A stretch of DNA of 64,000 bases from Lepidodermella squamata (GCA_047495785.1 JBLDXI010000003.1:1364001-1428000); one strand, 5' to 3'. Positions 6,766 to 38,686 are shown, counted from the first letter of the stretch. Notes: a model not told the origin generated them from the sequence alone. Made by a program: numbers and translations.

Positions 6766-8105
6766 TCACATGGTGCCACCACAGCTTTCTATATCAGCAA
6801 CTCCATATATGTTAGACTTGCCAGCACCCGGGTACCATGTAACCGCATGAGCGACGGTGTAGCAACAAGCTCCGAATGATGCGAAAGCATACATCACAGG
6901 GGCAAACTAATACATATTCAGAATTAATACAATATATGTTTGTACCGATCGCATGCTCACCAGTCCAGCTGTTGCATGTACGTGGCTAGCAACTGTAGCT
7001 GTATGGGGGAAACGGACGCAAAAGGCTGAAATTCCAGTGTAGAGATACTGCGAGGCACCTGTTATCTTGTAGGGATTAGCGTCAGCAGCTCCGATGCAGG
7101 TCAAAATCCCAGCAGCATTATTGGCCTGTGGGATGACTTCGTATTTGATCCAGGCAACGTTGGCAGGTGACTGCGTCGCTGCACAACAAAGATCAAATGT
7201 GCTAAATGTGTTGGGCCTGTCAGTAGATGCCTAGCCACATAAATTAACGCTAGGCAATTCTTGTATTTAGATGCGCAATGAAACAATTACTGAAGCGGCA
7301 GGGTTCACTGTCAGATAAGCGGTGCACGAAGCTCCGGCAACGTTGTGGCAAAATTTGACAGTTTGAGATACTCCAGAACCACCTTGGGTCGTCATCGAGC
7401 ACAATTGGTAGTTAGGCTGGAGCTGAGGATGAGTTGATGTGACCTACACTGTAATTTCAATATTGATCATAAATGAAGCTTAGCGCTTACCAACGTTGAT
7501 TTACTAATCGTTGCAATGCACTGATCGACAGAATCGAAAATATTCGCTGCAAACTATTTTCGGGCAGACATTGCGCGATTGGGTGATTAAGGAAGACGCA
7601 AGACTTTCGAAGATTTCTTACTTGCTTGACCAAGCGCAGAGATCCCGAACATCCCGGCACCGCAGGTGTGCAAGCGATCTTGTCGTTGCCATAATCGCAA
7701 ATCACGTATCGCTGCAAAATTGGGTCAAAAAGACTATCCATATTGATGACGCATAAAATGTCAAACCTGGGCAAATTTCTGGCAAACAACCGGATCCGAG
7801 AATTGTTCAGATATATCTAGAACAAAATTCACCGTGAGTTGCAAGTCATGCAACAAATATTTACAGCTGTTTCACCGCTTGTGCAAGACCCGGCTCTACA
7901 TGCTCCAGTTCCATTCGAGAAGCATTGAACGTACTTAGGAATGTCAGAAATTGCCAGGCTGTCAATGATTCATTTGAAATTTCACCATTTGATACGTAAT
8001 TGGACTGGAATCTTTGGCTGCATTTGGGTTACAAGCAGCTACGATCGATATCTGCTGAACGATAAATCCCAAGGCATATAGGAAAAAAATTGCTTTTAAA
8101 AACAT
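6766..8105 (-). CDS. Secreted Cys-rich protein, paralogue 1 (8 exons; +2 frameshift in exon 3, possible pseudogene)
   Basis: Signal peptide MFLKAIFFLYALGFIVQQISIVAAC. Phase-0 exons YVQCFSNG.., RYVICDYG..PGCSGSL, FAANIFDSVDQC, PNYQLC.., ..FCVRFPHT.., ..IESCGGTM*. Exon 3 (7816-7767) is 50 nt versus 48 nt in the paralogues. Confidence 0.75.
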
Positions 8106-8422
8106 CAGCTTGTTCAACCCAGAATGAAATAATATGCAAAAGTTTTTGTCCTCGTCAAATAATTGGAAACGTGAGCAGTTCAGTGCTTGCCGCTTCAACG
8201 GCTGCAACACCTCAGTTTTACTATATTATAGGTATATAGCACATTATAATGAAGTAATTAGTGGTATTGCTGCAAACAAGGAACTAACCCCTGGTAGTGA
8301 TGAAACGCCCTGTTGCGCAAAAGCCTAACAAAATGTAGCTCTCATTATAAGTGGAGTAAAAAAACAACCAGTGGCAGCCATTCCCTTTCTTTCATAACGT
8401 CCCGAAGAGAAACTTTCTTGTA

Positions 8423-9339
8423 CCCAGACCTGCCCAATTTAGTATGAAAATGGGTTTTCAAGGTATTTCATGGGCATAGATTTACGTTGGAGTCCAGAGA
8501 TTGAATAGTTGATTTGTGAAGTCGACAAGCACTAAGTATCGATTGGTGATTTGAGTAGGATAATTAGGACGAGGGAAATGCGAAAGTTCAATAAAAAAAT
8601 TTCGGTGATATAAGTGAGGGAGAATCTTAGGGACAGAATCAAAAAATTCGACACCTGAAACAGAAATCCTAAAAGTGATAGATGGAGACAAATGGATTTC
8701 AAAATCGTGATCAGGGCCTTCGAAAACTCCTAGAACTGCCGTAAAATATGTTTTCTCTCACAGATAATTAATTCCGCCATGAAAGGGTCAATTATAAGAA
8801 TCGCCCAATTTTTCCTTACCCCGTCGATAAGGTATCCACGATAAAATCTGTTGATACCTTGATCCGCTGGTGAGTACTTTTGTGTGCAGTAATATTATAT
8901 ACACCTAAGTGCTTGGTGGGTCATAGTGTTTGAGTATTAGCATGTACTCGTAAAAAAGCCAGCCGCTGAACCATCACGAACAATCGAACCCAGGTCTGCA
9001 AAAAATGACCATCTGACTGAGCGACCGATTGACCGAACGGCGAAAAACCGGACTATAATGAGCGAATTCCAGCTTGTCGATGTAGCCACATGCTTATTCT
9101 AGCGTATTTCAGTGCATTGCGTTCAGTGCATGGATAGAAAAAACATGACTTGAACAAAAATCGGCTGAAATTTGCGCTGCCCAGAAATCAGCTCCAGCGT
9201 ATTTCAATGAGCTCCCCATGCTTTATTGTAGCATATTTCAGCTTTCAGCTAATGAAATTAGTTCCTTATAAGCTTAAATGCTGAATGTCTGGAATTTCGT
9301 GCCCTTTTCGTATTCGTTTTCATTTCGTGTCGGTCTGGG
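8423..9339. mobile_element. Non-autonomous DNA element, CCCAGACC-terminus family
   Basis: Termini cccagacc / ggtctggg; subterminal gcgtatttcag repeats; 9060-9339 resembles 15760-16001. No clean TSD. Confidence 0.5.
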
Positions 9340-10231
9340 AATTATACTGCCGCTTTGCTGGTCAAATTTCAACCCTGTGATCAACAGCGTCAACAGCAGT
9401 GCTTCAGTTAACGCGTGCTTTTGTTTTGTTTTCTCCGTCATTTCGCCATTTTGTCATTTCATTATTTCTTCAATGCTTCATTTCTTCACAGTAGTGAAAT
9501 TCTAATTACCGTAATCCGGTAAAACTTTGAACATGTACAAGTTTGAACATTTCACGCAAATCAGCTTTTCTCTGAAACCACGGGGATCTACCGCTTGGGA
9601 ATTTTACTGAATATAGGTCTCGTTGAGATCTAACATTTTGCCAAGTTTCATCAACACAGCCCCCACAGTCTCTTCCTTAAAAATTCCCGAAAAAACAACG
9701 ATTTTGGTCTACTTTAAAGTGTTGTCCTGCGATAACCGTAGCAGATATTCGCGAGGTCCAACTTGGCGAATTGAAGCCTATACTTTTCTGAAGAAGTAGC
9801 CAAAAAGGCACGCCCATCTATAGAGTGGTTTTCGCGTGGCATGCGCTCAAAGGTGCAAACTTTGAACACTCGAAAGTACAACTTTGAACACGATGGAAAT
9901 TCATTATTTTGACTTTGAGGAGAATGTTTCGAGTTTTTCATAGACTTTGTTCGCATCATAGAGATCAGATTAATCAGAGAGGAAACTCAATGCAAAAATT
10001 TTCTGAAAAAAGTCAGCAAGTATTTTAAGAAGGATTTTTTTATTCCAAATTATTATCGATGACCTAGAAACTGCAGATTTTTGTTTTGCATCATGAAAAC
10101 TGACATTGAGCTATTTATTGTAAACTCGAAAGTAGTTTTCTTCGGCGACTCACTCCGAGCTTGACAACGCAAACCTCGTCCGATTAGGTGCTACCAAACA
10201 GGAAATATTGATGCGCGAAAATTTGTCAATT

Positions 10232-12920
10232 TTTCATTCATTCTCATTCATTCATTCTCATTTTTTATTGCAAATTGTTTTTCAACAGTTAGCAAATAGT
10301 TAAGTTTAGTTTAGCAGAAAGTTGTTTCTTGGCGCCTCACCACAGAAGTCACGTAGTTTACCAATGAAGGCGAATTAAATTTTATATGTTTGCAAAAAGC
10401 ACTGTGAGAGTTGTTAACCACGCAAGACGGCAGACGGTTCCACGCAGCACGCACGCGCCTGGAAAAGCTAAATTTATAGTTCAAGTTATTTCTAACCGCT
10501 TTCATCGTCACAGAATGAGGAGGAAGGCGAGAGTTTCGAGAGATTATAAAAAAGTCAGAGAAATTTATATCAATACAACCCTGATACATTTTATGCATTA
10601 GAATGAGGTCATGTTGGAAGCGGCGAACCTCTAGCGTCGTTAAGCCCAATTTCTGTAGACGTTCCTCATAAGATGCACCCTCGACCGTTTCGTGATACGA
10701 GCTTCGATAGAGTAGTCTTTTTGTGAACCGCTTTTGTACCGATTCAAGGTCATCAATATCCTGTAATGAAAAAGGCGAGTACACGGCTGGACAGAAGTCC
10801 AAACGAGATAATGTGTATGTTTTATACGCTCTAAATCGGAGGGCCTTAGACGAAAATGATTTGGCTATCATTCCATTAATACGATTACATTTCGCTGCGA
10901 GAGACTGACAATGATCTGAAAAAGCTTTGAATCGATAGTAACACCGAGATCTTTCACTGAGTTGACAACTTGCAGGTCCACACCATTGATGTTAAATTGA
11001 AACGGGAATTCATTTTTGCCCATTCTCAGTACGACACATTTTTTAGAATTAACAGACAATCCGTTATCGTCAAACCATTTGATTAACCGATCTAAGTCTT
11101 CCTGAAGTTCAAAGCAGTCTGTGAGATTACGAATGACCTTGTATAGCTTCGTGTCATCAGCAAATAACTTCATAATCGATTTCAGAATACACGAGTTCAC
11201 ATCCGATGTGTATATCAGAAACAATATCGGACCAAGAACCGAGCCTTGAGGCACTCCGGAAGTTACGGGGGACCATTCCGAGGCTTCAGAGTTGACAATC
11301 ACACGAAAGAAACGATCGGAAAGAAAAGCTTTTATCCAGCGAAGGAGCGCGCCACAAACGTTAATGTCAAGAAGCTTTGCTAACAACAATGTGATCGGAA
11401 CTGTATCGAAAGCCTTGGAAAGATCGAGGTAAATAACTACAACATCGAGGAGTTGGTCTAGAAAACCAAGCCAGTCGTTAGTACAAGAGAGGAGCTGCGT
11501 CTCGCAACATCTGCGCGATATGAAACCGAATTGGTTATCTGGGATCAAGTTATTCCTGTTCAAGTATATCAACAATTTGTCTTTTACAATAGTTTCCTGA
11601 ACTTTACATAGAATACAGGTTAGACTAACGGGTCTGTAATTCCCCGCCGAAGAAGCATCACCACTCTTCTTATAGATAGGAGCCACATTTGCGTATTTCC
11701 ACACAAGAGGAATTTCACCGGTCACTAATGATATTTGAAATAACAAAGATAAAGGCGTACAAAGCGATCGAGCTAGTTTTTTTATCAAGACGGCTGGTAG
11801 ATTATCAACACCACCTACTGGCTTTTCTTTGATCTGACAGACATAATCATACACCAAATCAGCAGTAAAATCTATGGTCTGAATACAGTCGTTTACAGCC
11901 TTAAAGTTCGGTGAGCTGAGAATGACTTATTGTTGTAGGCTCCAGCGAATTGCTGCCTAAAGGCTTCAGCCTTACCTGAATCATCCACAATGCTAACGTT
12001 GTTCGAAACTAGGGCTGGAATCGCTGGGCGAGCTTTGAAACGCATAGAGAAGTAATTGTACAGATCATCAATTTTGTTAGCAGAGAGCAGATTTTCCTCG
12101 TAATTTCGTCTAGCCTTGCGATATTCACAATCATACATTAAGCAGGCCGCTTTATAGCGAAGAAAGTCAGATGATAATTTCCCACTTGCTCTCCATTGGC
12201 GGTACAGGCGACTTTTCCTATTTGATAACCGCTGAATGGCCGCGCTGACCCAGGGCATTCGCCCTTTCTTTCGCTTACGAGTCTTCCGTCGAGGTACGAA
12301 TAGCAAAATGCCTCGATAGATTGTGTGCAGAAACCGTGTGTAACAGGTGTCCATGCTGCAGTTTGAGAACATTACAAGCCAGTTTACCGAATCTACATAG
12401 TTCCCAAAGTTGACGTAGTCGCATTTCCGAAAGTTGAAGGCGCTCAAAACATGAGTCTTTGAACTTGATGAGCAAAATTCCACATTCATCCTGAATCTTA
12501 CAACATTATGATCACAAGAAGCCGCGAGCGGTTCATCAACTTCGACACACGAGACGATGTTAGGAATATTAGATATGACTAGGTCGAGGATATTATCACC
12601 ACGCGTTGGTTTATCAACATATTGGATTAGATTATTTCTCAGAAAGAACTCGGTAAAACATGAGTAAAGTAATTTGCTAGGATTTTTGAACGTTACCCAG
12701 TTGAACTCTGGCAAGTTGAAGTCACCAACCATTACGCAGGGTTCTGAAGTATCGACTTGCTTTTGCAAGTAACTCACGAGATCACGAATGGATTCCATTG
12801 GCGAATTAGGTGACCGATATACGATAACCAACCGTAGCGATGTTCTATCGAGCTGACAAAGACAAGTGACACATTCTATATAGCCATCGAAAGAGAAGGT
12901 GCTAAGAAGGCGAGGATCAT
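10232..12920 (-). mobile_element. 5'-truncated CR1/L2-group LINE, ORF2 (APE endonuclease + RT) frameshifted
   Basis: ORF pieces 11893-12831 (VYRSPN, GDFNLP, LDLV), 10868-11857 (YRPVSL, QFGF, DLSKAFD, GVPQGSVLGP, FADD) and 10311-10871 lie in three different frames. AATAAA plus (TGAA)n tail at ~10232-10268. Confidence 0.92.
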
Positions 12921-12924
12921 GTTA

Positions 12925-13559
12925 GCAAAACTTTCTTTCGCTATATCTCCAAAGTGGGTCAGGGTTTTGGCTGAGCTTTACAGAAATGAAACTTTGGGAT
13001 GTGCTCTATCAGATGGTATAAGCCTTGCGGATGGCTTTTGGGTATAACTCGAGTTATTACGGCTCAAAGTAGGCATACTCGACCTATAAAACCATCACTT
13101 CTGAAGGCCCCATGACAATTTGGATTGCACCACCGTGTTCAGCATGGTCGAATTACTTAAGGTGCAAAGTTTTACATCGCTGGGTTGAGCAGTTGACGCG
13201 CAGACGTAAGGAGCGTAGAAAAACAAATTAACGCTTAATTTGCATTGCGTCGCTTAAAAGTAATTATTTTAATTTTTTAATTTCTCGCATGTTTTTACGA
13301 ATATTTATTTGAAACATGAATCAATTTGGAATTCGGCCAAGCTGAACACGATGGTGCAATCCAAATTGTCATGGGGCCTTCAGAAGTGATGGTTTTATAG
13401 GTCGAGTATGCCTACTTTGAGCCGTAATAACTCGAGTTATACCCAAAAGCCATCCGCAAGGCTTATACCATCTGATAGAGCACATCCCAAAGTTTCATTT
13501 CTGTAAAGCTCAGCCAAAACCCTGACCCACTTTGGAGATATAGCGAAAGAAAGTTTTGC
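12925..13559. repeat. Long inverted repeat (foldback): 230-bp arms, 175-bp spacer
   Basis: 12925-13154 is the reverse complement of 13330-13559; I see only 3 mismatches, all near the inner ends. Confidence 0.95.
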
Positions 13560-14072
13560 AATTTACACGAAAAAACTAGGATTTGCTAATACAAAATATC
13601 TCCACATGGGAAGCTGATTTGAGCACGCGGTTTTTTGCGGTGTGTTGTTTCTGGGGTGAGGAATTTTATAGAATGCCTTATAATCATGAATTCGAGAAAC
13701 CTGATGGCTAAATTTGATGTTTTCCCATAAGCTCAAAGGGGGCAAATATTATTAAAATTCCTCCTTAATGAAAAAAATGCAAAATGAATTTTTACAGAAT
13801 TTTTTCTGCATCAGTTTCCTCTCTGGTTAATCTGATCTCTATGGTTCGCATTTACAGAACTCTGCGCTATGCTCCATAGAGAACGTAATGATCAGAAAAA
13901 AGACTTCCTATCTCGTAATGGCAACGAATTAATTTCAAATACCGAGTAAAAAGTCCACCATAAAAATGTTAATAACTTATTATTTTTCAATTTTCACGCA
14001 ACACTCTCTCTGAAGCAAAACAGTGAGGTGAAAATCGCAAACTTCACGCGAAATTCTCTACGCGCGAATAAA

Positions 14073-14293
14073 GGGGGAGCACGTGGCTTAGTGGTTAAGC
14101 GTCCGCTGTGCTTTCTCTGAAGGTCAGTGGTTCGTCTCCGAGTCACGGCGCGTGTGTAACTGAGCTGAGCACTTTACCCCTACTGCTCCGGCTGAGTGGC
14201 AGCAATACCCTCGGTCGCCGATCCTTCTCGTCGGATCATGCAGATGATAATTGCACGTCAATAAAGTTTAAGTTTAAGTTTTAAGTTTAAAGT
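14073..14293 (+). mobile_element. tRNA-derived SINE
   Basis: A box TGGCTTAGTGG, B box GGTTCGTCTCC, core ctgagcactttacccctactgctcc, AATAAA and (AAGTTT)n tail. Confidence 0.8.
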
Positions 14294-14522
14294 TGGATTT
14301 TTTATTTCACAAAATCTTCAAAGTTGTACTTTTGGGGTACCCCTTGCCAAATCCTTACGCTTGCGAATTTTCGAGAATAAAAAATATCAGGATGTTACGG
14401 AAGGCGGCCCCAGTCGAAATACGTTGAAGACCCGACCAAAATCGCATCTGTTGAATTTACACAGCACATTGAAGTTTGCATAGATGTAGGTTGTAGGTGT
14501 TCAAAGTTGTACTGGATTACGG

Positions 14523-16001
14523 CCCAGACCGGCACGAAATCAGCTGAAATACGCTGAAATAATTAAGCTGAAATAAGCTGGCAAATGATTTCAGTCGATT
14601 TCAGCTTAGCGTTTTTCCAGCGTATTTCAGCTTAAAGCTATTTCAGCGTATTTCAGCTGTGATGTCATGGAAGTTCAGCGTATTTCAGCACTTTTCAGGT
14701 CATTTTTCATTTTTCATTTAAAATCTCGAAATCTTCAAAGTCGATAATTTCCTGAAAATAGATCACCTGATCCACATGATCAGACAGATAGACAAAAATT
14801 TCTGGAAAATCGAATATTTTAAATGAAATTCAAATTCAACCCCCTGCAATATTCGGGCTAAATAATAAATAAAATAAAATAAAAATCTTTATTATTGTCC
14901 TCCGTCCGAATAAAAATTCACATAATAACTCTCTACTAATACCATAGAACAAGAGGCGCGAGCAAACAAGATGAATCCATGCTCATCGGATCGATGGTGC
15001 AAGGAAGAGACAGAAAGGGAGAGGGCGAGGGTTTTATCAGTTGCAGGGTAGTTATCGAGAACGGAGAGAAACATGAAACAGGGAAAAGGCGGTAAAATGG
15101 AGAAAAGAATGCGGAGGCAACGTTAGCGAACGGATATAGGAATTCTATAAAAAAACACAAGGCATTCTGACGGGTAGATGAAAGACAAGCAACAGGAAAG
15201 ATGAGTTGAAGGTGGAAGAAAGAGAAGAAGAGAGGAGTGGAAGAAGAAAAAAAGAGAGAAGACAGAGGCGAAAAGGTGAGAAGGGAGAAAACAGCCTAGC
15301 CTATGAAGTCGGGCAGAGGACCACGAGGAAGTCTGTTGCTCAACAGCGCGAAGGGCGAGCGCGGAGGGGGGGCTAGCGAAATGATTATCAAGACATCCAA
15401 CCATTAAAATATGAAAATTCACAAAAAGGGTAATATCATGAAACTAACTTACAAATTTGACGATGATTTGTTTTTGGATCGGGTTTTCAATGGCGAACTT
15501 ATGAACGGTTATATTAGCATATGCACACTTTTATTCGGAGGCTAATTCAGCTCGTTTCAGCATGCAATAGTTGCTAACTGAAAGCTGCCAAACTGAAAGC
15601 CCGATTATGAAAACACGTTAGCGTAAAACTCCAGCAATTTCCGGCTAAAAATAAATTTAGCTGAAATAGGCTGAAATTCTGCAGAAAATAAACCGAAACT
15701 CAGGGCCTGCCAAGTCGTGGAAATGGAAAACCAATTTGAATTTCGCGCAATGCGTCTTACAGAATTTCAGCGTATTTCAGCTTGTCGATGTCGCCACGTG
15801 CTTATTTCAGCGTATTTAAGCGCGATGCTTTGATGGGCAGAAAAAAGCATCACTTGACAAAAAATTGGCTGAAAAGTGCGCAGCCCAGAAATCAGCTCCA
15901 GCGTATTTCAGAGGCGACGAGCTCGTCATGCCTTATTTCAGCGTATTTCAGCTGATGAAATCAATTCCAGCGTATTTCAGCTTATTCCGTGCCGGTCTGG
16001 G
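14523..16001. mobile_element. Non-autonomous DNA element, CCCAGACC-terminus family (CACTA/EnSpm-like architecture)
   Basis: TIRs CCCAGACCGGCACG(A/G)AAT; many GCGTATTTCAGC subterminal repeats in both orientations. Superfamily assignment is tentative. Confidence 0.7.
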
Positions 16002-16190
16002 CGATATGCACGGAATAATTATGCACAGCGGGTTTCAGCCGATTGGTCATGTAATGGGAGCTTCAAAGCCGCGGCGTCCTATACGTGGTACTATGGTACG
16101 TCTTATGACGGATTTTACTGATTTTCATCCGCTCTTGTGTGGTTAACTTGAAATTGCATACGATTTTTAGATTAACACCCAATCAATTCA

Positions 16191-19000
16191 TTATAGCCCT
16201 GGTGAAGTAGCACTGCATGTTTCCATTCCTGACACTCCATATATGCTAGCTGTGCCGGCACCCGGTGTTTTGATTGGCAATTGAGCGAGAGCAATGCAGC
16301 AATCTTCGAATGAGCGGAATCCAAATGTCGTAACGTATTCTCCCTGTTGCATATTAAATTATCATACATTTTAGCAACAAAATGTATGCTCACCAATCCA
16401 CTAAATACTTGCACGTGAAAAACTTGGGTAGCTGTGTGTGGGAAACGAACGCAGTAGACAGGCATAGCAACATAAAGAAATGCTGTAGCAGCTGATATTC
16501 TGTAAGGTGTCGCATCAGCTGCTCCGATGCAGGTCGAAATCCCAGCAGCATTATTGGCCTGCGGGATGACTTCGTATTTGATCCAGGCAACGTTGGCAGG
16601 TGTCTGCGTGGCTGCACAACAAAGATCAAATGTGCTAAATGTGTTGGGCTTGTCAATAGATGCCTAGCCACATAAATAAACGCCAGGCAATTCTTGTATT
16701 TAGATGCGCAATAAAACAATTACTGAAGCGGCAGGGGTAACTGTCAGATAAGCGGTGCACGAAGCTCCGGCAACGTTGTGGCAAAATTTGACAGTTCGAG
16801 ATACTACAATACCACCTTGGGTCGTCATTGAGCACAGTCGGTATATAGTCTGGAAAAGACAAATCGACCTTATCTTAAAACATAGAGAACGTAGCTTTTC
16901 TCTGGGATGCTTAGTGATTATTATGGGATATCTGAGATTACCACACGACATGCTTATACCTTCACGTAAGCTGAAATGGCCGATGTGCATTGTTCAGCGG
17001 ACTGGAATAGTTGATTTGCGAACTGGATAAATGGATTAAGTATTGCACGACTGTGTTGTATTTTTAGCCCTTGGGTACCTTCGAGCTAGCTTGCAAACCG
17101 CAGCCACATCCAGGCGTAGATGCCACGCAAGACAAATCCGAAGAGGCGTTTTCGCAGATGACATAACGCTAAAATCAGTAAAACGGTGAGTTACAGTGCG
17201 CGAGGTTTGGAAGCCAATTGGGCGCTTACCGATCTACTCATTGTAGCCATGCACTGATCGACAGAGTCAAAAACATTCGCCTCAAACTATTAATAATACG
17301 GTTAACAACATATTATGTAGTAGATAAAGAAGCCGTGAGATGCCAGTTTTCTCTAACATTAATCGCTCGCATGCTATTGGTCGATTCGAAAATTAACGCA
17401 ATAATGCCCAACTTTGAAACAAAACAACCGTCGACTTGACAGATTTGTGGCTAATAGTCAAGACCGACGCAATTCGCCTCTTGATAAATCTATGCGAAAA
17501 AATCTCGAAAATCTATTGAAAATTGGCTGAGTTATGTTAACACGTTTGGTGAGCTGGTGTGGTATTCCACCCCGAATATCTCAACACCCATACAGTTACA
17601 CTGGTTAAATGAGCTGCTAGTAATTTCATGCCATCGTATAGTATGAGCGACTAATATATCAATATACCGTAGTTACCGAAATACTAACCCGGGCCTTTAC
17701 AAAAATGATACCTTGAAAAATGGGAAAAAGTAGGCTACTATTCAAGACTAGGCTTCTATTTGAGATAGGCTTATGCAACGAAGACCTTACCTAATTTTGC
17801 GTGTTTCAGTCTCAAAGCTCATCAATTTTTTCATTACTAGCTGTTAGCTAGGTCGCCTAATAGCTGAAAATTGATAATAATAAGGAGCGCCACAACAAAA
17901 ATCATCTCAAATCGCAGATTATTAAACATCTTCAGGCATTTTTTGTTTTTACAACCTTTAATCTCGGGAGAGCACACATGCCGTAGTAGACTAGGCTACT
18001 ATTTGAGATAGGACAATGCATCGAAGAATTTCAATTTACCTAGGCTTCTAAACGAGACAGGCTTCTAAACGAGTGGGGGCTTATATTTCGGTAACTACGG
18101 TATTATAAGAATACATGGGATCTTGTAGGAATTTATCCTGAGTAAAGCCCATAATAGTCATAGAGAATTAAAGGATTATTCTATAGCTAGCCATAGAGAA
18201 ATGAAATTTCCCCCTGATCTGAAACCCCGAGCGAGATTGGCGCTCTAGGCTCCCTGAAAGGGTGCAATGGGTACATAGAGGTGATTTCAGGATAATCATT
18301 TCGGTTCCGCCTTACATTTATTTTTTCACCTTTAACCTCTGTCCTCAATTCCGGTTCTGGCTTCTATATAGGCGACGCCTAGTATTTCGGTATTTACGGT
18401 ATTTGGAAGCTTAAGATCAGTCATTTAAAAGACATTCCGAGACCGGGGTAAGGCAGGATGCAGTATGGTAAATCTAAGTTTTCTCACTTGCGTGGTCAAA
18501 TGCAGAGATCCCGAGCATCCCGGAACAGCAGGTGTGCACGTCAAAGTTTCGTTGCCGTAACCACAAATAACGTAGCGCTGGAAATAAATGTTGAAAGAGA
18601 ATAGGCTGTTCCAGATTACCTAAAGCTGTATATATATATATATCACCTGCGCATATTTTTGGCAAACAAGAAGATCCGAGAATTTTCCAGATATCTGTAG
18701 AGCAAACGCAAAAGTTATGATGATCTTCAAGTCCCAAAAGAGATAATCACAGTTGTTTCTCCGCTTGCGCAAGAATCGGCTTTACATGAACCAATTCCAT
18801 TCGAGAAGCATTGAATGTACTTTGGGATATCAGAAAATAGTCAGAAATCATGGGAACACTGGAAATTTCACCGATTGATACGTAACCGGGCTCGAACCTT
18901 GGGCAGCTTGCTGACCATTTGGAGTACATCCAGTCACAATCGACAGCAGCTGAGAGATCAAGCCCGCGACAGACAGGATACGGTTAGCTTTAAAAAACAT
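16191..19000 (-). CDS. Secreted Cys-rich protein, paralogue 2 (10 exons, intact)
   Basis: MFFKANRILSVAGLISQLLSIVTGC..; carries an extra two-exon module RYVICENASSDLSC..PGCGCG / FANQLFQSAEQC; last exon ..FRSFEDCC..SPGL*. All introns GT-AG, phase 0. Confidence 0.82.
17667..18100. mobile_element. Tc1/pogo-like MITE in intron 4 of paralogue 2
   Basis: Perfect TIR CCGTAGTTACCGAAATA with TA on both flanks; internal aggct(a/t)cta repeats. Confidence 0.88.
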
Positions 19001-19899: not shown

Positions 19900-21278
19900 T
19901 TATGCCATTTCTCCAATACATATTTCCATATTCGTCACACCATAAATAGAAGCTGTGGAAGCGCCTGCTACGTGTAAGGGGGCAGCACCGAGAGCGTAGC
20001 AGCAAGCTTGGAATGATGCGTGATTATAGGACAAAACTCCCGCCTGAAACATGACATAAATCATCACAAATGTACAAAGCAACCGAGCGCATGCTTACCA
20101 TCACAGTTACTTGCACATGACCGGCATGGGTAGCTGTGTGGGGAAAGCGAACGCAATAAGCGCGAGATGCAGAAGCCATATAAAGAGAGAAAGCTGTTAT
20201 TTTGTATGGAATCGGATCGATAGCTCCGATGCAGGTCATAATTCCAGCAGCATTTCCGGCTTGCGGGATGACTTCGTATTTGATCCAGGCAGCATTTGCA
20301 GGTGACTGAGTGGCAGTGCAGCAAAGAGCAAATGTGCTGAACGTATTGGGAAAGTCGAAAGACGCCTAGCCACATAAATCGACAATACAAGTAACTATTA
20401 GGTTTGGACTTGCAGATAAAATCATTACCGTAGCAGCAGGAGCTGCCGTCAGATAAGCTGTACACGAAGCTCCAGCGACATTGTGGCAAAATTTGACGGT
20501 TTGTGAAACACCAGAGCCACCCTGGGTCGTCATTGAGCACAATTGGTAAGTAGGCTGGATAGAGGTAGATGTGACCTACATCTTTGCGTCAATATTGATC
20601 GTTAATAGAGTTCAGCACTTACAGATGTTGATTTGCTAATCGTTGCAATTCATTGATCGAAAATATTCGCTGCAAACTAGTGATGAATGGGCAATGGGCA
20701 GAATTTGCGTTTTAGTGATCGATGAAGACTTTTAAATTTTTTCTCTGCTCTTTCTTTTCCCTGATGAAAGTCTGAGGTTTTCTTACTTGCTTGACCAAGC
20801 GCAGAGATCCCGAGCATCCCGGAACAGCTGGTGTGCATGCGATCTTGTCATTGCCGTAATCACAAATCACGTATCGCTAGAAATTGCGTTGAAATTGACT
20901 GCTATAATATCTAATATGGCGCGTGGAATATCCAACCTGGGCAAATTTTTGGCACACAACCGGGTCCGAGAATTGTTCAGATATCTAGAACTCAATTCGG
21001 GGTGGGCTTCAAGTCATATGCAAGAAATATTTACAGCAGTTTCACCGCTTGTGCAAGACCCGGCTCTGCATGCCCCAGTTCCATTAGAGAAGCATTGAAC
21101 ATACTTGAGAATGGCAGAAAATTGTCAGGTTATCACTGTCACATATTGAAAATATTACCATTTGATATGTAACTGGACTGGAATCTTTGGCTACACTTTG
21201 GCTACACCCAGCTACAATCGATATCAGCTGAGCAATGAAGCCGAAGACATTCAGGAAAAAACTAGCTTTTAGAAACAT
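19900..21278 (-). CDS. Secreted Cys-rich protein, paralogue 3 (8 exons; in-frame TGA in exon 5)
   Basis: Exons colinear with paralogue 1. Exon 5 reads FAANIFDQ*IATISKSTS (TGA at 20652-20650); all other exons are open; ends ..ICIGEMA*. Confidence 0.75.
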
Positions 21279-21915
21279 TAGATTCTTTAACCAAGGCTGT
21301 AAAAAATCTATAGTCTGTCAACAAATTTTTTGTCTGCGTCAAGAAAGTGGAATATACGTGAGCAGTTCAGAACTCACGCTCCAAAAGCTTCAACACCTCA
21401 GTTTTAATATAGCGTATTGTAATGAAATAATTAGTGGTGTTGCTATAAACTCAACCTTGGTCGTGATGAAGACGGAAATTAGTTGACCGAGAATGATGAT
21501 CCAATAATTTCTTTCCTACAATGATCGTACAAATACAAAATCTCAGCTCACCGAGGCGACCATTCGAATAGCCCTAATCGTACAGTCTGTCCCATACAGT
21601 TTGGTTGAAGTTTTTTGGTTGCCATTTCGCCAATTCGTGGTATTTTTCCTTGAGCCTACAACCGTTGGAAAGAGGAGTCTCGCCTGAATGTTTTAAGCTA
21701 CAGCTAATTGTTGTGTGATAAGCGGATGGGAAATACCAGGTCAGCAACATCATTTTTTAAGATCGCAAATGACAACCATTTTTAAAAATCATATTTTGTT
21801 TCTTATATCGCTAACCATTTGAAATTTCGGATTGTTTGAAAACTATTTTTTGCTTATAACGCATTATATTTTTGCTTATGAGGGGGGTGAAAAACAAATC
21901 ACGTAGTGGCTTATT

Positions 21916-22636
21916 GGGACTGAGGATTGCTGCTAAATACCTTGATCGGAAGACTCTCAAACTTATGGCGAATGACCTGATATTCTGCCGCCTGATGTAC
22001 TGCGACACCTCTCTCTCGCAGTTGGCACCGACCAAGCTCAACAAACTACAACGTCGCCAAGACCAGGCCGTAAGAATCATTTGTCACGCCCCAATGAACT
22101 CAGACCCAGCACCGCTCAGACAAAAACTCGGATGGCTGGATCTCGACGGAAAACGAAAAGTGCACCTGGCAACACTAATCTGGCGCCATAGCCAACTTCT
22201 TCAAACTTCGAACCGCACCAATGGCTTCTACCCGTAAACCAATCGCCCTGAAAGTACTTTCGAACATCCCAGAGGTGCCCAGGACTAAGTCAGTGATCAT
22301 GGATCGGTGGTTGGCTCACCATGGATCGGTATTTTGGAATTCTCTGCCCGACCACATCCGCACATCTAAAACTGCCGACCAATGCAGAAACTTGGTTTAC
22401 CGTCACCTGCTAACACACAAAAAGAACTTACCTCAAATACCGTCGCCTGAAACCATTGTTTTCTTTGTTAAGCTTTCTTCTTTTTTTATACATATAAGTT
22501 ACATGATGTTTTATAACTACCTAATATTGTGTACAGTTTGATCTAGCCCTAATTAATCCATTGTCTTTTTTACAGCTGAGCTTTCCAACTTTTTCTAAAA
22601 ACGAATGAATGGCTCATAAATAAATAAATAAATAAA
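21916..22636 (+). mobile_element. 3' fragment of an L2/CR1-group LINE
   Basis: Frameshifted ORF2 C-terminus (RLMYC..KLQRRQDQAVRII..LGWL; FWNSLPDHIR) followed by a (TAAA)n tail at ~22617-22636. Confidence 0.85.
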
Positions 22637-22641
22637 TTGTC

Positions 22642-25600
22642 TCAAAGGCCATTGCCGCCAACGCATATATCAATTTTCGTCAATCCATATATGTCAGCTG
22701 CGGTTGCGCCTTGTTTTACGGGCGCGTTGCCGAGAGCGAAGCAGCAAGCTTCAAATGAAGCGTAAGAAAATACCGTAACTCCTGTCTGTAAAATACATCC
22801 TTAATTCTTAAAAAAATGTACCCAGAAATAAAGAAAATTCTCACCAATCCGCCAGCTACTTGTACGTGACTAGGCTGGGTAGCTGTGTGCGGGAAACGAA
22901 CGCAATAGGCCAGAGCTCCAGGACCTGGGGTTTGAATAGAAGCTGTTATTTTGTAGGGATTAGCATCAACAGCTCCGATGCATGTCGAAATTGCACCACC
23001 ATAGTTGGAATGCTTGACGACTTCGTATTTGATCAAGGCTGGTGTCTGAGTGGCAGCACAGCAAAGATCAAACGTGTTGAATGAGTTGGGCGAGTCAGTA
23101 GAAGCCTAGCCACATGAATTGATTACAAACAACCGCGTTCAAGGGCGAAATTAAATAAAAAACCATAGCAGAAGATAATACTGACAGATAGGCGTTACAC
23201 ATGTAACTTCCAGGGACATTATGACAAAATTTGACAGTTTGAGATACTCCAGAAGCCCCCTGGGTCGTCACTGAGCACAATTGGTAATAAGACTGAAAGA
23301 GAAATAGAAGTTGAAAAGAAGAGGGCTATCGCGATTTCACGAGCCAACCCAACGAGCCAAAAGGCATTGCCTTGCAGATGGGAATATTTGAAGACCGTAC
23401 TTGATCGATAAAGATGCAGCGTGAATTTATGTATTTTGCCATGTTGACGACACGTACCTTCGAGCTGACTCTTAGATCGCCGGTACAACCTGATTGAGAT
23501 TCCAAGCAAGAATATTCGGATTTGGAGTTCTCGCATATCACATATTGCTAGAAAGAGGAAAAGTCAGTGAGACGAAGAACGAAGAAAACTGAAACGTAAT
23601 TTAGACCCTACAAGTAAAATAACAGGCTGAGGCAAAGTATACTCAGTGGGAAAATTTAAGTTTGTATCACTGGTCGCTGCGTCGACTGAACTGAGGGTTT
23701 AAAAAACTCACAATTTCCAAGTCCCTAAGGTAAAATGCGTGATCTGCATGTTCGAATTGATTAGTAAACCATGATAAAAGTGTGAAAATTTAAGTAAAAA
23801 GATTAGACTATCGATGTCATGCATAGGCAAAAACACTTTTAACATTTTAACTTGTAACAGTCATTCCTTGGGGGTGACGTGTCTGTCCCCGAAGGTTTTA
23901 CCGTGTTTTTCTTACTCAGCATATAGTTGATTCATTAAACAGGTAATCTTAGTAAATGCTCTACAGACCTGAAGATCTTTCAGCAATAGATGGGGTTACA
24001 TCTACAAAGGTATCTACGTTATGTTATCTACGTAACATGAGCATCCAAAATCTTGCAAAGGACGATCATGAGGTGTAAAAACCCTGATCAACTACCTACC
24101 TCTACTAAATCAACAACTGAGTAAGAAAAACAGCAGCAGAAGCTTATAAAAGCCACCAGTCGCCCTCAAGGAGTGACGTCAACTGACCAGAGGTGGAAAC
24201 AGATCGGGTTGGCCGGCCGGTAAGTCTCCCGGTTGCCGGTTGGGTCGGATCGCCGGTTGGGTATGGGTCGACTAAATTCCAGCCGGTTGACCGGTATATT
24301 GGAATTTTTAGCATGAAAGCCATTCATTTAGCGAATTGAACGCGGTAGTGAGACTTCCGCGAAAAGTTCTTCGTGGCAGGCGTAGAAAGAAAGCTTTTAT
24401 CAGCAATGTGTGGCCTGCGCTTATTTATTTTTAGAATTTTGGTTTTTCATAGTGGTTTTAAGACATTTTGAATTACAAAGAAAGCATTTGCATGATTCAC
24501 GCTGTTTTTGTTTGGGAAACATGCTCCTGAAACCGGTTAAAAGCCGGTAAATAGCCGGTGAAAAGCCGGTAAACCGGCGTGGGTGCACCGGCTTTCTACC
24601 GGCTTGGGTTGCCGGTGGGTGACCTGGGTGCCGGTTGGGTCGCCGGTTGGGTTGGGTCGAGTTTTTCCGACCCAACCTTTCCACCCAAGAATAGCAGCGA
24701 CAAGCGACAATGCATGATATTAACATAATTAATGTTTTTGGATTTCTTTGACTTTCTCATGCTCTGATTACCATTTCGACCATGCTGAGCACGAATTTAC
24801 CACGCTGAAAGTCGCACACTGGTTCTATATTCTCTATCGAGTGACACTTAGCTACCGGGTGAGTGGAATCAAATACAAGGAAAATTCAAATTTAACCGTT
24901 GAGGACCTTCGTCGTTAAGTATTATATTAGATTAGGCACTTACCGATGTAGTGATTGCTGTCACGCACCGATCGAGAGAGGTGAAGGTGTTCGCGGATAA
25001 CTAGTAAATAGGTAAACTATTAAGCAAGGTTTCTTGGTCTTCTCAAATCGCAAATGTCAAAGCTGGGATTCGGTAATCTCCGAGCAGTTTGAACTCTAGC
25101 TTCCCCATTTATTCCCTGTACCTAGTTCTCAGTTATTTCAAAATCTCTGGATTATCGCTAGAATTGGTGTTATATAATTGGTTAGCAGTAAGCATTGATG
25201 AAGGGGGTACGTGAGAGTATCTTTTCAGCCCCGAATTTATCTGATAAAAGGATCCCTGTGGTTTTTTCAGGTTTCCTTGCTATCAGACCTCTCGAGGTGG
25301 TGAGTACGGTACCCTTGGAACTTCGCAAACTGGATGAAAACGATTTATGGGGTTTGAAAAATGCAAGCACTTCGTGGTCATCGGGAGCTGAGAAGCCCTG
25401 CAATAGATTTAAAGCATTATCCTCACTACCTTGTCAATGCCTAGAGATCCTGAGCACCCCGGAACAGCCGGTGTGCATGAGAGGCTGCCCTCATAGCCAT
25501 AACCGCAAATCACATAGCGCTATAAAATAATGCTTGAAATTGCTGATTCACATCTGGAATAAAGCAAACTTGCGCATATTTCTGACAGACCGCCAGGTCT

Positions 25601-25922
25601 GAGAATTTATCAGATATCTAAGTATAGCAAAAAGTACGATGTGATGCTGGTCATGCAGGAGTAATTTACCGTTGTTTCTCCGCTTGAGCAGGAATCGACT
25701 TTACATGACCCAGTGCCATTTGAAAAGCACTGAACGTACTAAACGGAATTCAGATAATTACCGAGCTCCTTGGAAAATTGGGAATCTCACCATTTTAAAT
25801 GCAACTGTACCAGAATCCCTGCCCGCAGGCTGGACACTTGGGCTGCTACAGCCAGCTGCAGTCGATATCAGCCTATTGATGCACCACAAGGCTGACAGGA
25901 AACAGTTTGCATTAAAAAACAT
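22642..25922 (-). CDS. Secreted Cys-rich protein, paralogue 4 (10 exons, intact)
   Basis: MFFNANCFLSALWCINRLISTAAGC.. (alternative ATG at 25931). Exons include LSANTFTSLDRC (~25000-24944), QYVICENS..SGCTGDL, YGLQIFPSARQC; ends ..ICVGGNGL*. Confidence 0.8.
23611..24931 (-). mobile_element. Helitron-like non-autonomous insertion in intron 5 of paralogue 4, with internal MITE-like inverted repeats
   Basis: Absent from the equivalent intron of paralogue 5 (gacccta|ttagg at ~28076-28087). On the minus strand it starts TCTAATATAAT, ends CTTG, sits between A and T with no TSD, and has a short CTGAG..CTCAG hairpin near the 3' end. Internal inverted repeat ~23860-24178. Confidence 0.72.
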
Positions 25923-26379
25923 TGGATACATTGAATTCCCAGACTGTAGCGAAAATCGTGTAATCTTTTGACTAAATTATTTGTCTTCGTTGCGATAAGG
26001 AAAAACGTGAGCAGCGGAGTGTTTACAACTCACTCACAGCGCTTCAATTTAACTCTTCAATCGCATTGTAATGAAACATTGAGTTACTACACGTAATAAA
26101 CTCATCTGGGCTTTGTTTTTCTCAACTTTCAAACCGGAAACCGACATTTCCGCTACCCTGGACTATTTATCACATTTCAAACACATTTATCACATTTGTT
26201 GTCAAAAAGTTTGTGATATGGCTATTTAAGAGCTGAGACCTATTGCGAACAGCGATCACTGTTAGATCGCTCATCGGTAGCGCTAACCTATAACGTGTAG
26301 TTTTATTAGCTAGGCCGTGCTATGTATCGCGCATCGGGCTGCTATCCTCATCCGAAGGTCTTATTCGAACAGCTTATAT

Positions 26380-26623
26380 CAGTGCTCCGCAAAATATTTT
26401 CACCATCGGCTTTTTTGACGGCCGGAAAGCCTAAGCTCCAGCCACAATTTTGGCTGAAAATAGTACAAAACAGGCTGATTTTCGGGTTATGATCGTGCGA
26501 AACAAGGCGTCCGGCCGCATTCCAGCAATCCTTGGAGAAAATCCTATCGGCCGCCAATGGGCCGCCATGATCTGCCCAGCCGGCCGCACGTGGCCGGAAA
26601 AATTCCGAGTTTGCTGAGCACTG
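26380..26623. mobile_element. hAT-like MITE
   Basis: TIRs CAGTGCTC(C/A)GCAAA; flanking 8-mers only partly match (gcttatat / atttaaat). Confidence 0.55.
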
Positions 26624-27125
26624 ATTTAAATACAAAATTAGCTGCCCGAGTTGGATAAATGAAATTGGGCGGTGGTTTAACCAGTCAAGGCGACTTTGTT
26701 TACTTTAGGGCGCATCTCTTCAAAACGAGGGCGCACTATTATTAAATGAGGGCTGAGATTAAACGAGGGCGGACTTTTACCTTTTGGGGCGGCAAATTTT
26801 ATTTTACCGATTTTCTATTCCAAATAAAATTAGATTTGCTAGGAGTTGTCAGTTGTCACGCGGGTTTCCAGTCAGAACGAGCAGCCTCGGCGTCCTACAG
26901 TAGGTCTCATGAGTATATATACGGCTAAATCCTCTGGAGATAATCCTCTGAAAGTTGTTTAGAAAAATAGCAACCGTTAGTTGCCATTAGTTTATTCAAA
27001 GATTCTTAGCATTTTAAACGGACTTGATCGGATTTCATCCGGTGAAATCGATAAGCCAAAAATAGCTCGCACAGTTCAAGTACACTGTTGTGTGAAAAAC
27101 AGATAACAAATTCTTATTCGTTGTT

Positions 27126-29122
27126 TCACGTGTCATTGCCGCCAACGCATATATCAATTCTAGTCATGCCATAACCAATGTCAGCTGCGGTTGCGCCTTG
27201 TTTCACGGGCGCGTTGCCGAGAGCGAAGCAACAAGCTTCAAACGAAGCGTGAGAAAATGCCGTAACTCCTGTCTGTAAAATACATCCTTAATTCTTAGAC
27301 AAAAATGTACCCAGATATCAAGAAATTCTCACCAATCCGCCAGCTACTTGTACGTGACTAGGCTGGGTAGCTGTGTGCGGGAAACGAACGCAATAGGCCA
27401 GAGCTCCAGGACCTGGGGTTTGAATAGAAGCTGTTATTTTGTAGGGATTAGCATCAACAGCTCCGATGCATGTCGAAATTGCACCACCATAGTTGGAATG
27501 CTTGACGACTTCGTATTTGATCAAGGCTGGTGTCTGAGTGGCAGCACAGCAAAGATCAAACGTGTTGAATGAGTTGGGCGAGTCAGTAGAAGCCTAGCCA
27601 CATGAATTGATTATAAACAACCGCGTTCAAGGGCGTTAAATAAAAAACTTGAGCAGATGTCAGATAAGCGTTACATATGTTCCCATCTCCAGGGACATTA
27701 TGACAAAATTTGACAGTTTGAGATACTCCAGAGGCACCCTGTGTTGTAATTGAGCACAATTGGTAATAAGACTGAAAGAGAAATAAAAGTTTAAAAGAAG
27801 AGGGCTATCGCAATTTCACGAGCCAACCGAACTAGCCAAAATGCATTGTCGAGCAGGATAGAACATTTGATTACCGTACTTGATCGATTAAGATGCAGTA
27901 TTAATATATGTATTCCGCCGTGTTGACCTTCTTACCTTCGAGCTGACTCTTAGATCACCGGTACATCCTGATTTAGACTCCACGCAAGAAAGATCGTGGT
28001 TGGAGTTCTCGCAAATGACATATTGCTGGAAAGAGGAAAAGGTCAGTGAGACGAAGAAAACTGTACCGTGAATTAGACCCTATTAGGCACTCACCGATGT
28101 AATCGCTGTCACGCATCGATCAACAGAGTTGAAGGTGTTCGCTGATAACTAGTAAAATATGTCTCTATCAAGCGGGGTTTCGTGGCCTTCTCAATTGGGT
28201 CAAAGCTGGGGTTCCGGGATCTCCGAGCAGTTTGAACTCTAGCTTCCCGATTTATTCTCTGTAGTTCTCAGTTCTTAAGAAATATCAGGATTTTGGTTAG
28301 TATTTAAACGCCGATAGAATTGATTAAAATATTAGATGAAATAGGATCCTCAAGATGAAGGGGAGAAGGGTAGGGGATGCATGAGAGTATTTAAAGTCGG
28401 AATTATCTGACCACGGGCATATGGCGTAGATATCTACGTCACGTGACTGAAGGGCCCATTGTGGTTTTTTTGGGTTTCCTTGATATCAGGACCTCTCGAG
28501 GTGGGGAGTACAGTACCCTTAGTTCTTCGCACACTGGATGAAAACTGTTCACGGGGTTTGAAAAATGGAAGCACTTCGGGGCCGTCGGGGGCTGAGAAGC
28601 CCTGCAATGAATTGGCAGTTTCCTTACTACATTGACGCGTAGAGATCCTGAGCAACCCGGAACAGCCGGTGTGCATGAGAGGCCGTCATAGCCGTAACCG
28701 CAAATCACATATCGCTGTAAAATGACGCGTGAAACTTGAAGTTGCTTTTTCACATCTGGAATATATCAAACTTGCGCATATTTCTGGCAGACAGCCAGGT
28801 CTGAGAATTTATCAGATATCTAGAGCAACAAGTACAATGTGATGCTGGTCATGCATTAATAATTTACCGTTGTTTCTCCGCTTGAGCAAGAATCGGCTTT
28901 ACATGATCCAATGCCATTTAAAAAGCACTGTACGTACTGAACGAAATTCAGATAATTGACCAGCCATCATTGGAACATTTGGTATCTCACCATTTTGTTA
29001 GCAACTGTGCCAGAATCCTTGCCCGCGGGCTGGACACTTGGGCTGCTGCAACCAGCTACAGTCGATATGAGCTTAATGATACAGCACAAGGCTGACAGGA
29101 AACAGTTTGCATTAAAAAACAT
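27126..29122 (-). CDS. Secreted Cys-rich protein, paralogue 5 (10 exons, intact)
   Basis: Colinear with paralogue 4: LSANTFNSVDRC, QYVICENSNHDLSC..GCTGDL, YGNQMFYPARQC; ends ..ICVGGNDT*. Alternative ATG at 29131. Confidence 0.8.
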
Positions 29123-38244: not shown

Positions 38245-38686
38245 ATGGCCACGAGAATTTTTATTATCTTCGCGATTTTCTCTTCAGCAAGTTGGCTTTT
38301 CTAATCATTAAACCTAATTGCATGCTTCCTAATGTTAAGGTGCTCTGACATGCTACTCTGGGAGTGATGCGAACAATTACGGACAATGCACAGCAAATTC
38401 GACCGGTTACTGTTTTGTAAGCCGCAGTTAAAATTCAATTCCTTTCGTGAATTTTTGAAAAATTCAGAAAAATGTGGCTCGAACAGCCGGTTACTCCACC
38501 TCAAAGGGTTGCACGTACTCTTGCACAGAGACAACCAATAGCTGTGTTTCAAATCTATGTTTCGACTCCTACTGCTGCAAATCCGGAGACTTATGCAACT
38601 CGACTAATAGAATTCTCTACTCAATAACAACTATCTTTTTGATCTGTATCCCAATTTATTTCAATTTCAGCAAATCAAGAAGCTGA
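38245..38686 (+). CDS. Ly6/uPAR three-finger protein, probably GPI-anchored
   Basis: Exons 38245-38290, 38340-38416, 38468-38686. Signal peptide, ALTCY start, CCKSGDLCN end motif, hydrophobic tail. Confidence 0.85.

Follow-up and report, generated by a model that had tools for sequence, protein, structure and literature searches.

Five tandem genes for predicted secreted, cysteine-rich proteins in Lepidodermella squamata: a small branch of a large, apparently lineage-restricted family with borderline Kunitz-like modules

Introduction

What are the five tandem genes on the minus strand of a 64,000-nucleotide (nt) stretch of the Lepidodermella squamata assembly (GCA_047495785.1 JBLDXI010000003.1:1364001-1428000; "the window" in what follows, positions being counted from its first letter), and are the small cysteine-rich modules that they encode related to Kunitz domains? 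Both questions were raised by a first-pass annotation, made from the sequence alone, which described positions 6766-29122 as a five-gene family of secreted proteins assembled from phase-0 exons encoding divergent Kunitz-like modules.

Lineage-specific tandem families of secreted cysteine (Cys)-rich proteins generated by exon shuffling are of a familiar kind, and in classical metazoan extracellular modules the bounding introns are mostly of phase 1 (Patthy's phase-1 rule). The genes described here resemble such families in their signal peptide, in their disulfide modules bounded by introns of a single phase, in tandem duplication, in module gain and loss and in module re-use. They differ in that all introns are phase 0, in that the mini-module is itself split by a phase-0 intron and in that neither a relative nor a fold match is known for the C-terminal core.

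On balance we think it probable that the five are genuine genes and belong to an old and large family, restricted to its lineage, whose secreted disulfide-rich proteins are likely to be extracellular binders. If real and expressed, this would be among the largest families in an animal genome that is compact at 121 Mb, and would constitute a lineage-specific extracellular system with candidate roles in recognition, defence, inhibition or matrix formation, one that is invisible to every domain and structure library tried. The locus would also be a clean natural example of module gain, decay and loss by way of symmetric phase-0 exons, unlike the phase-1 rule, and a borderline Kunitz signal leads to a testable question: can a Kunitz domain survive headless as a four-Cys module?

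Results

Five co-linear genes assembled from phase-0 exons

Self-blastn of 6-30.5 kb resolved five related blocks, and the exon peptides of gene 1 retrieved by tblastn the same ordered series of short open reading frames (ORFs) five times, always on the minus strand; the five minus-strand paralogues claimed earlier were thus recovered, with the same outer coordinates. Exon boundaries were placed by eye on three-frame displays and then checked by script, the models being predicted from sequence. The genes (g1 to g5) and their exons (e1 to e8), with lengths in amino acids (aa), are as follows.

g1, 6766-8105, minus strand: signal-peptide exon, two mini-modules and core; spliced product 302 aa with 19 Cys
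g1 exons, minus strand: e1 7986-8105, e2 7865-7933, e3 7767-7814, e4 7622-7711, e5 7491-7553
g1 exons, minus strand, continued: e6 7309-7416, e7 6961-7230, e8 6769-6906, stop 6766-6768
g1 e7, 6961-7230, minus strand: the 90-aa hallmark exon of the large family
Extra AT in g1, 7815-7816, minus strand: between the e3 acceptor and the e3 reading frame
g2, 16191-19000, minus strand: signal peptide, three complete mini-modules and core; spliced product 358 aa with 24 Cys
g2 exons, minus strand: e1 18872-19000, e2 18751-18819, e3 18647-18694, e4 18488-18577, e5 17230-17286
g2 exons, minus strand, continued: e4b 17079-17168, e5b 16960-17022, e6 16742-16849, e7 16394-16663, e8 16194-16343, stop 16191-16193
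g3, 19900-21278, minus strand: built as g1, with the helix exon of module 2 disabled
g3 exons, minus strand: e1 21159-21278, e2 21035-21103, e3 20937-20984, e4 20787-20876, e5 about 20623-20676
g3 exons, minus strand, continued: e6 20429-20554, e7 20099-20365, e8 19903-20043, stop 19900-19902
In-frame TGA in g3 e5, 20650-20652, minus strand: at a cysteine codon, beside a 9-nt deletion
g4, 22642-25922, minus strand: signal peptide, two complete mini-modules, a third whose helix exon is weak, and core
g4 exons, minus strand: e1 25791-25922, e2 25670-25738, e3 25570-25617, e4 25430-25519, e5 24944-25000
g4 exons, minus strand, continued: e4b 23458-23547, e5b candidate 23349-23399, e6 23182-23292, e7 22845-23105, e8 22645-22785, stop 22642-22644
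g5, 27126-29122, minus strand: built in the same way as g4
g5 exons, minus strand: e1 28991-29122, e2 28868-28936, e3 28772-28819, e4 28631-28714, e5 28095-28148
g5 exons, minus strand, continued: e4b 27936-28025, e5b candidate 27828-27878, e6 27649-27771, e7 27333-27593, e8 27129-27272, stop 27126-27128

In the script check the length of every exon of the five genes proved divisible by 3 nt, each exon lay between AG and GT, and all joined in phase 0, in agreement with the first-pass claim that all introns resolved are of this phase. Intron lengths are mostly 47-110 nt. Four long introns (1201 nt in g2, 429 and 1396 nt in g4 and 482 nt in g5) fall in an overall range of 429-1544 nt; about 1.3 kb of the intron between e5 and e4b of g4 has no counterpart in g5 by self-blastn. 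The candidate e5b exons sit inside gaps of 165 nt (g4) and 164 nt (g5).

The proteins are predicted to share a simple plan. Exon e1 encodes a typical signal peptide, with a hydrophobic MFLKAIFFLYALGFIV..IVAA stretch followed by small residues and then a Cys; at the other end only 3-7 codons separate the last Cys from the stop, and there is no hydrophobic tail. Between the signal peptide and the core stand two or three mini-modules of 39-51 aa with four Cys (e2+e3, e4+e5 and e4b+e5b), each consisting of a "hairpin" exon with three Cys and a "helix" exon with one (N/Q-x-F-x-S-x3-C). The Cys spacing is C-x6-9-C-x4-6-C, then one Cys in the next exon, and the phase-0 intron inside the module lies 6-10 residues past the third Cys, which is the GC cysteine in RYVIC-type exons. 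The sequence motifs quoted by the first-pass annotation are all present: RYVIC-x8/9-C-x5-GC in e4 of the five genes and in e4b of g2, QYVIC at the opening of e4b of g4 and g5, FQSAEQC in the g2 exon at 16960-17022, NTFTSLDRC in the g4 exon at 24944-25000 and FRSFEDCC in the last exon of g2. Its general picture of a tandem family with signal peptides, constructed from symmetric phase-0 exons with a repeated two-exon, four-Cys module, holds.

Exons e6, e7 (90 aa) and e8 form a conserved C-terminal core of about 170 aa and 10 Cys with the motifs YQLC...VKFCHN, F-x-T-F-x-x-CC, IKYEV, TCIG, PYK and CVRFPHT. As a family pattern, e7 can be written F-x-[ST]-F-x-x-CC ... [IV]-x-Y-E ... C-[IV]-G ... P-Y-K ... 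C-x-R-F-P. The exon ahead of it has the pattern YQLC...KFC...C, and the one behind it F-x-x-CC...Y-G...C, with the stop next. All five genes carry these three exons in order, as do 45 further distinct copies at other loci. Natural paralogues fuse the same exons without an intron, e6 with e7 in six cases (L031, L036, L037, L043, L047 and L071) and e7 with e8 in two (L007 and L076), the frame continuing exactly as in the predicted splice, and so corroborate the junctions between e6 and e7 and between e7 and e8. Five co-linear paralogues with conserved splice sites are therefore confirmed, and the pattern is far beyond chance.

The core belongs to a large family and the mini-module is re-used

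A profile of the five e7 exons (A1) was used in a six-frame search of the animal's own assembly (121 Mb, 151 contigs). It gave at least 150 scored matches and 265 candidates, spread over many contigs and often in tandem runs, with the limit that pairs of equal score on different contigs may be haplotigs; an internal stop is absent from 147 of the 150 matches listed. A sample of 50 loci contained 45 distinct e7 peptides, and the copies are mostly diverged from one another (30-65% identity). The "five-gene family" of the first-pass annotation was thus drawn much too small. Since other members open with another exon, in which a signal peptide is followed by a Cys/Thr-rich stretch such as CP-x-STTTTPCPT, and join it directly to e6-e8, these three exons are a constant core behind a variable N-terminal part. 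The genes of the window form a small subfamily of a large, apparently lineage-restricted core family.

The mini-module has a distribution of its own. A profile of the RYVIC-type hairpin exon e4 (A2) has 29 matches in the genome, most of them on contig C3: in one gene 55 kb before the window, in the five genes themselves, in a plus-strand group past the window and in a group near 1.81-1.83 Mb. Because e4 matches occur both in C3 genes with different ends and in mucin/lectin genes of contig C17, the mini-module is a mobile cassette, and this re-use in other gene architectures supports the first-pass picture of genes built from exon cassettes.

Among these other genes, the plus-strand group some 7 kb past the window end (L053-L055, C3:1433500-1476000) has the same signal exon and mini-modules and adds modules of a third type (WIRC...C...C-x-AGE with N-x-N-F-E-S-E-x-S-C); neither the A1 search nor the stretches of the cluster that were read revealed an e7-type exon. 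On C17 (L057, 683500-693000, minus strand), two tandem genes are headed by a mini-module (YYIIC...C.PAVPGC, then F-G-N-x-A-F-N-T-S-E-x-C) and run on into an extended Thr/Pro mucin stretch and a C-type lectin domain. In one copy, scanned as a partial ORF, Pfam Lectin_C reaches 18.2 bits, below the cut-off, and the other copy shows the WIGxxD...WLDG...ICE half of the domain. An ORF of a long interspersed nuclear element (LINE) lies on the opposite strand directly beside the scanned copy.

No relatives of the core exons were recovered outside this genome, in line with the claim of lineage specificity; the mini-module itself was compared with Pfam and PDB only. Against 1.84 billion protein cluster representatives the e7 profile gave four matches, all to low-complexity stretches of bacterial repeat proteins and spurious. 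Pfam gave no match to any of the exons or to the e6+e7 and e7+e8 fusion proteins, PDB sequences gave no meaningful match to a profile of 41 e7(+e8) sequences, the JGI metagenome contigs contained no relative of the A1 e7 profile, and an ESM Atlas feature search, whose recognition value is low, was also blank. The family is undescribed in every library searched, and its core is without a fold match.

The fold of the core

The core was modelled with AlphaFold2 (AF2) from the naturally fused e7+e8 of L007 (134 aa; over e7, 64% identical to g2 and g3 and 59% to g1), using an alignment (A4) of 41 rows, ten of them spanning both exons. The best model has a predicted local distance difference test score (pLDDT) of 74.9 and a predicted TM-score (pTM) of 0.60. 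It is mixed alpha/beta, with each of the two CC doublets placed in a helix and with strands that would form a hairpin (IKYEI / ITTCI), a strand YCAR and a terminal hairpin. Foldseek of this model against PDB gave a best E of 0.88 and TM values of 0.19-0.24; an exhaustive VIA-align comparison with 48,161 chains gave a best Z of 3.1, where 7-8 is typical even for models without a clear match; and the best TM in an ESM Atlas shape search was 0.33. Either the core has a new fold or the model is inadequate.

The first-pass annotation had also taken the C-terminal "modules" to be Kunitz-like. With no Kunitz fold among these matches, there is no evidence that the C-terminal core is related to Kunitz domains. 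Nor is there support for its halves as copies of the RYVIC module: e6/e7a and e7b/e8 score 9.3 and 8.2 against it by hhalign, the level of shuffles, and this candidate was rejected. Compared with each other, e6/e7a and e7b/e8 reach a P of only 5e-4, in an offset register.

A three-finger (Ly6/uPAR) origin of the core was likewise rejected, as neither Foldseek nor VIA-align found a three-finger match, although many such structures are in PDB. The core shares with Ly6/uPAR proteins the LTC...D.N.Y...YC stretch of e7, about 10 Cys and a CC doublet, and e7 has a tblastn match (E 0.078) on a Ly6-like gene of the window, at 38.3-38.7 kb. It is, in contrast, twice as long and lacks both the CC-x4-CN ending and the N-terminal C-x2-C: Ly6/uPAR domains have 8-10 Cys in 70-90 aa and end in CC-x4-CN, whereas the 10 Cys of the core extend across about 170 aa, without a final CN.

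Gain, decay and conversion of modules

Symmetric phase-0 exons allow modules to be duplicated or lost without a break in the frame, and the five genes display several stages of this, so that the module gain and loss suggested by the first-pass annotation is borne out: there is a third module in g2, a dead helix exon in g3 and a decaying helix exon in g4 and g5. Combinatorial exon skipping, also put forward by that annotation, would likewise be allowed by the symmetry. The same annotation had credited paralogues 2, 4 and 5 with one more module each. This is fully correct for g2, whose third module is complete; in g4 and g5 the third hairpin exon (e4b) is intact and the helix exon (e5b) is weak and diverged. 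The latter keeps its frame and AG/GT with weak splice sites, and is 77% identical between g4 and g5, compared with 93% for the downstream and 76% for the upstream intron.

Exon e7, by comparison, is 100% identical between g4 and g5, with 95-98% identity in the flanking introns and about 89% over the remainder of the gene, a pattern suggestive of gene conversion or of a recent patch.

The e7-e8 intron is stop-free and a multiple of three in several paralogues among L025, L028, L041, L042, L048, L049, L084 and L085, as is the e4-e5 intron of L052. Retention of such introns would keep the frame and add 16-25 residues.

Constraint, and what the proteins may do

Exons of g1 and g3 are 72-94% identical (91-94% over e2-e5, 55% for the last exon) compared with 57-81% for introns, and dN/dS (the ratio of nonsynonymous to synonymous change) over all exons is 0.23 for g1/g3, 0.27 for g4/g5, 0.41 for g1/g2 and 0.35 for g2/g5. 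Across 44 paralogues, the most constrained stretch of e7 is FCVRFPHT, with a pN/pS of 0.18, against 0.8-0.9 in the two most variable loops, from PYK to CVRFPHT and after CVRFPHT, which vary in sequence and in length.

The explanation that we favour for the five genes starts from a core, e6-e8, that recurs at least 150 times behind differing N-terminal parts and in front of which, in this subfamily, two or three mini-modules have been placed after the signal peptide. Phase-0 symmetry permits their duplication and loss, with modules now at added (g2), decaying (g4, g5) and dead (g3) stages and with patches of conversion. The products would be non-enzymatic extracellular binding proteins, a disulfide-locked scaffold bearing two fast-changing loops, and the mini-modules may serve as added binding or spacer units. 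Microbes, proteases, self-markers and matrix partners are the candidate targets.

Several observations weigh against this explanation. The frame of g1 e3 is broken by the extra AT (ctag followed by ATATATCTGAA in g1 versus ctag followed by ATATCTGAA in g3); since one contig of the DNA run X1 is without two letters at 7811, at the start of this exon, the lesion is either a polymorphism or an assembly error in an AT repeat. Exon e5 of g3 has a 9-nt deletion and a TGA in place of a Cys codon (FAANIFDQ*IATISKST, the asterisk being the stop, versus FAANIFDSVDQCIATISKSTL in g1), so that g3 is either truncated there or must skip this exon. The Cys count of each predicted mature protein is odd (1 + 4n + 10). 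The sole public run that covers the stretch is of DNA, with even cover over introns and intergenic sequence and no joints. Synonymous sites are saturated (pS 0.6-0.77 among the 44 paralogues), so that the loop variability is to be read as relaxed constraint rather than as proven diversifying selection; the same saturation indicates that the core family is old. The orphan status of the family may partly reflect sampling, as its host has no close relatives in the protein database: the SAM synthetase of the window (34511-35614, plus strand) shares no more than 65-67% identity with any protein in a clustered set of 5.8 billion, and its best matches come from animals as diverse as nematodes, arthropods, a calcareous sponge and a sea anemone. 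The five AF2 models of the core vary widely (pLDDT 42-75), and the lack of a fold match may therefore reflect a poor model. Finally, near-identical tandem runs exist elsewhere in the genome, for example eight equal-score matches at C11:1149045-1191784.

The lesions, together with the degenerating e5b of g4 and g5, the LINE inserted between g1 and g2 and a search for RNA runs that found none (only the DNA run covers the stretch), are what would be expected if the five copies were decaying pseudogenes from which no protein is now made. We regard this as very improbable. Apart from the lesions of g1 and g3 the exons are stop-free and all splice sites are kept, dN/dS stays far under 1, conservation is higher in exons than in introns, one DNA-run contig is free of the g1 lesion, and nearly all listed family matches are free of internal stops, as described above.

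Near-identical runs bear on function instead, as they are expected where high output is needed, and the main functional rival is bulk structural or adhesive secretion, as in glue or in an egg or cuticle matrix. Ala, Thr, Ser, Gly and Pro abound in the loops, an odd number of Cys per protein could cross-link chains, and a mucin-linked relative of the mini-module exists on C17. Most copies of the family, however, are only 30-65% identical with saturated synonymous sites, where greater homogenisation is usual in structural arrays; long low-complexity repeats are absent from the five genes; and Pfam glue and fibroin families match at chance level only (E 0.2-0.6). A role in bulk secretion is thus quite unlikely.

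The summed depth of X1 contigs is about five- to ten-fold higher at 7100-7380 (g1 e6-e7), and several alternative letters are seen; the region attracts contigs from close paralogues or alleles at 95% likeness or more, and the rise is not a measure of copy number.

Are the mini-modules Kunitz domains?

In several respects the mini-module resembles the Kunitz/BPTI domain (PF00014): both are small secreted disulfide modules with a hairpin, here predicted, and a helix, and C...(G)GC-x-G...N-x-F-x-S/T-x3-C is co-linear in the two, a likeness that we consider borderline. They differ in that the module has four and not six Cys, an additional Cys in strand 1, no P1 loop and a phase-0 rather than a phase-1 intron. 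Taking the PF00014 gathering threshold of 21 bits as the criterion of membership, three spliced modules gave no match at E up to 10. The genome contains at least 149 PF00014 matches, and among those listed none is in the window or in this family. A local hidden Markov model (HMM) trained on 12 of the genome's genuine Kunitz domains gave the modules at most 5.4 bits, from the helix motif only, and sequence searches of PDB with the module or hairpin-exon profile found no Kunitz domain.

A profile-profile comparison by hhalign was more favourable. Twenty-two script-spliced mini-modules (from the window and seven other loci) were set against 18 genuine Kunitz domains of the same genome. The local alignment scored 22.9 (probability 58.8%, P 9.4e-5) over 25 columns, Kunitz being the one known domain family compared, and exceeded the module's scores with the family's own C-terminal parts (9.3 and 8.2). 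It places Cys 2, 3 and 4 of the module (Cb, Cc, Cd) on Kunitz C30, C38 and C51, GC-x-G on GGC-x-G and N-x-F-x-S-x3-C on the start of the Kunitz helix, with a seven-residue insertion in the module exactly at its intron position. The score is above all 350 shuffles, whose maxima were 16.4 (200 column shuffles) and 18.1 (150 with Cys fixed); as no Cys-fixed shuffle reaches 22.9, the signal exceeds what cysteine spacing alone provides. In global mode the probability falls below 2%.

The cysteine framework is of another kind. The Kunitz spacing C-x8-C-x15-C-x7-C-x12-C-x3-C joins six Cys as C1-C6, C2-C4 and C3-C5, and the modules have four. C5, C14 and C55 have no counterpart, so that neither C14, the partner of C38, nor the C5-C55 pair exists. 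No sequence is available for the P1 loop (residues about 11-19) either, the module opening at its exon boundary with R/Q-Y-V-I-C directly after the preceding helix exon. The first-pass statement that the canonical P1-loop cysteines are lacking is accordingly correct and extends to the N-terminal third as a whole. As the reactive-site loop is absent, the modules would not be canonical Kunitz inhibitors, and canonical protease inhibition would, from the sequence, have little chance.

The AF2 model of one module (g2 e3+e4+e5), for which the alignment had depth over the hairpin exon only, contains a hairpin (RYVICGYG / TLTCTP) and a C-terminal helix, and is unreliable (pLDDT 48.7, pTM 0.30). Foldseek against PDB found no Kunitz domain with it, a result to which so poor a model lends no weight. 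In the model, the additional Cys of strand 1 faces the second Cys across the hairpin, which suggests a disulfide pattern unlike that of Kunitz domains.

Gene structure was compared as well. Kunitz matches of the genome end or begin near model positions 7-16 and 33-39, some being intron-split there, and three-exon Kunitz genes may exist. In the one genuine split Kunitz gene that was read (L064, 1760-2000, C15 ~1336820-1337060), a phase-1 intron follows YGGCDG. The module intron is phase 0 and lies seven residues further on; neither position nor phase is shared.

The first-pass description of a Kunitz-like four-Cys module therefore stands in part: the local profile match to the C30-C51 region speaks for it, and the HMM and PDB sequence searches, the intron phase and the N-terminal third speak against it. 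As an ancestor of the mini-module, the C-terminal two-thirds of a Kunitz domain is in our view doubtful, if a fair possibility. The wider proposal, in which the mini-modules are true Kunitz domains minus their N-terminal third and the proteins are protease inhibitors or toxins, we consider unlikely. It can draw on the local match and on its cysteine, GC-x-G and helix correspondences, on the hairpin and helix of the module model and on the many genuine Kunitz domains of the genome. It has to contend with the blank PF00014 and PDB searches and low local HMM scores, the global alignment, a reactive loop and three cysteines whose absence would make canonical inhibition impossible, the new strand-1 Cys, the difference in intron phase and position, the poor module model with its Foldseek result and a C-terminal region that is not Kunitz-like.

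Two-disulfide Kunitz variants such as conkunitzin-S1 and atypical tick Kunitz peptides demonstrate that the fold survives with fewer than three disulfides and that non-inhibitor roles are possible. Such variants keep the full-length domain, including the N-terminal segment and the binding loop, and Kunitz profiles still detect them; the modules described here, in contrast, are without the N-terminal segment and undetected by these profiles. A combined proposal would have the core as a novel fold, the family as at least 100 secreted recognition or defence molecules of an unsampled animal lineage, their loops varying on a scaffold that stays fixed, and the mini-modules as headless Kunitz domains that lost the exon of the reactive loop and of which the remainder spread as a phase-0 cassette. 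Taken jointly, these statements are distinctly improbable.

Neighbouring features of the window

Beyond the SAM synthetase gene mentioned above, a small two-exon gene at 38300-38690 (plus strand) resembles a Ly6/uPAR three-finger protein with a glycosylphosphatidylinositol (GPI) signal. Its first exon reads ...LTCYSGSDANNYGQCTANSTGYC and its second ...KGC..SC...C...C...YCCKSGDLCNS, followed by a hydrophobic tail; scanned alone, the second exon had no match in Pfam. The LINE between g1 and g2, a non-LTR (long terminal repeat) retrotransposon, occupies 10311-12831 on the minus strand, and its ORFs match an endonuclease (Exo_endo_phos_2, E 5e-10) and a reverse transcriptase (RVT_1, E 5e-32). Next to the element is a 230-bp inverted repeat, 12925-13154 and 13330-13559, the two copies of which are 98.7% identical.

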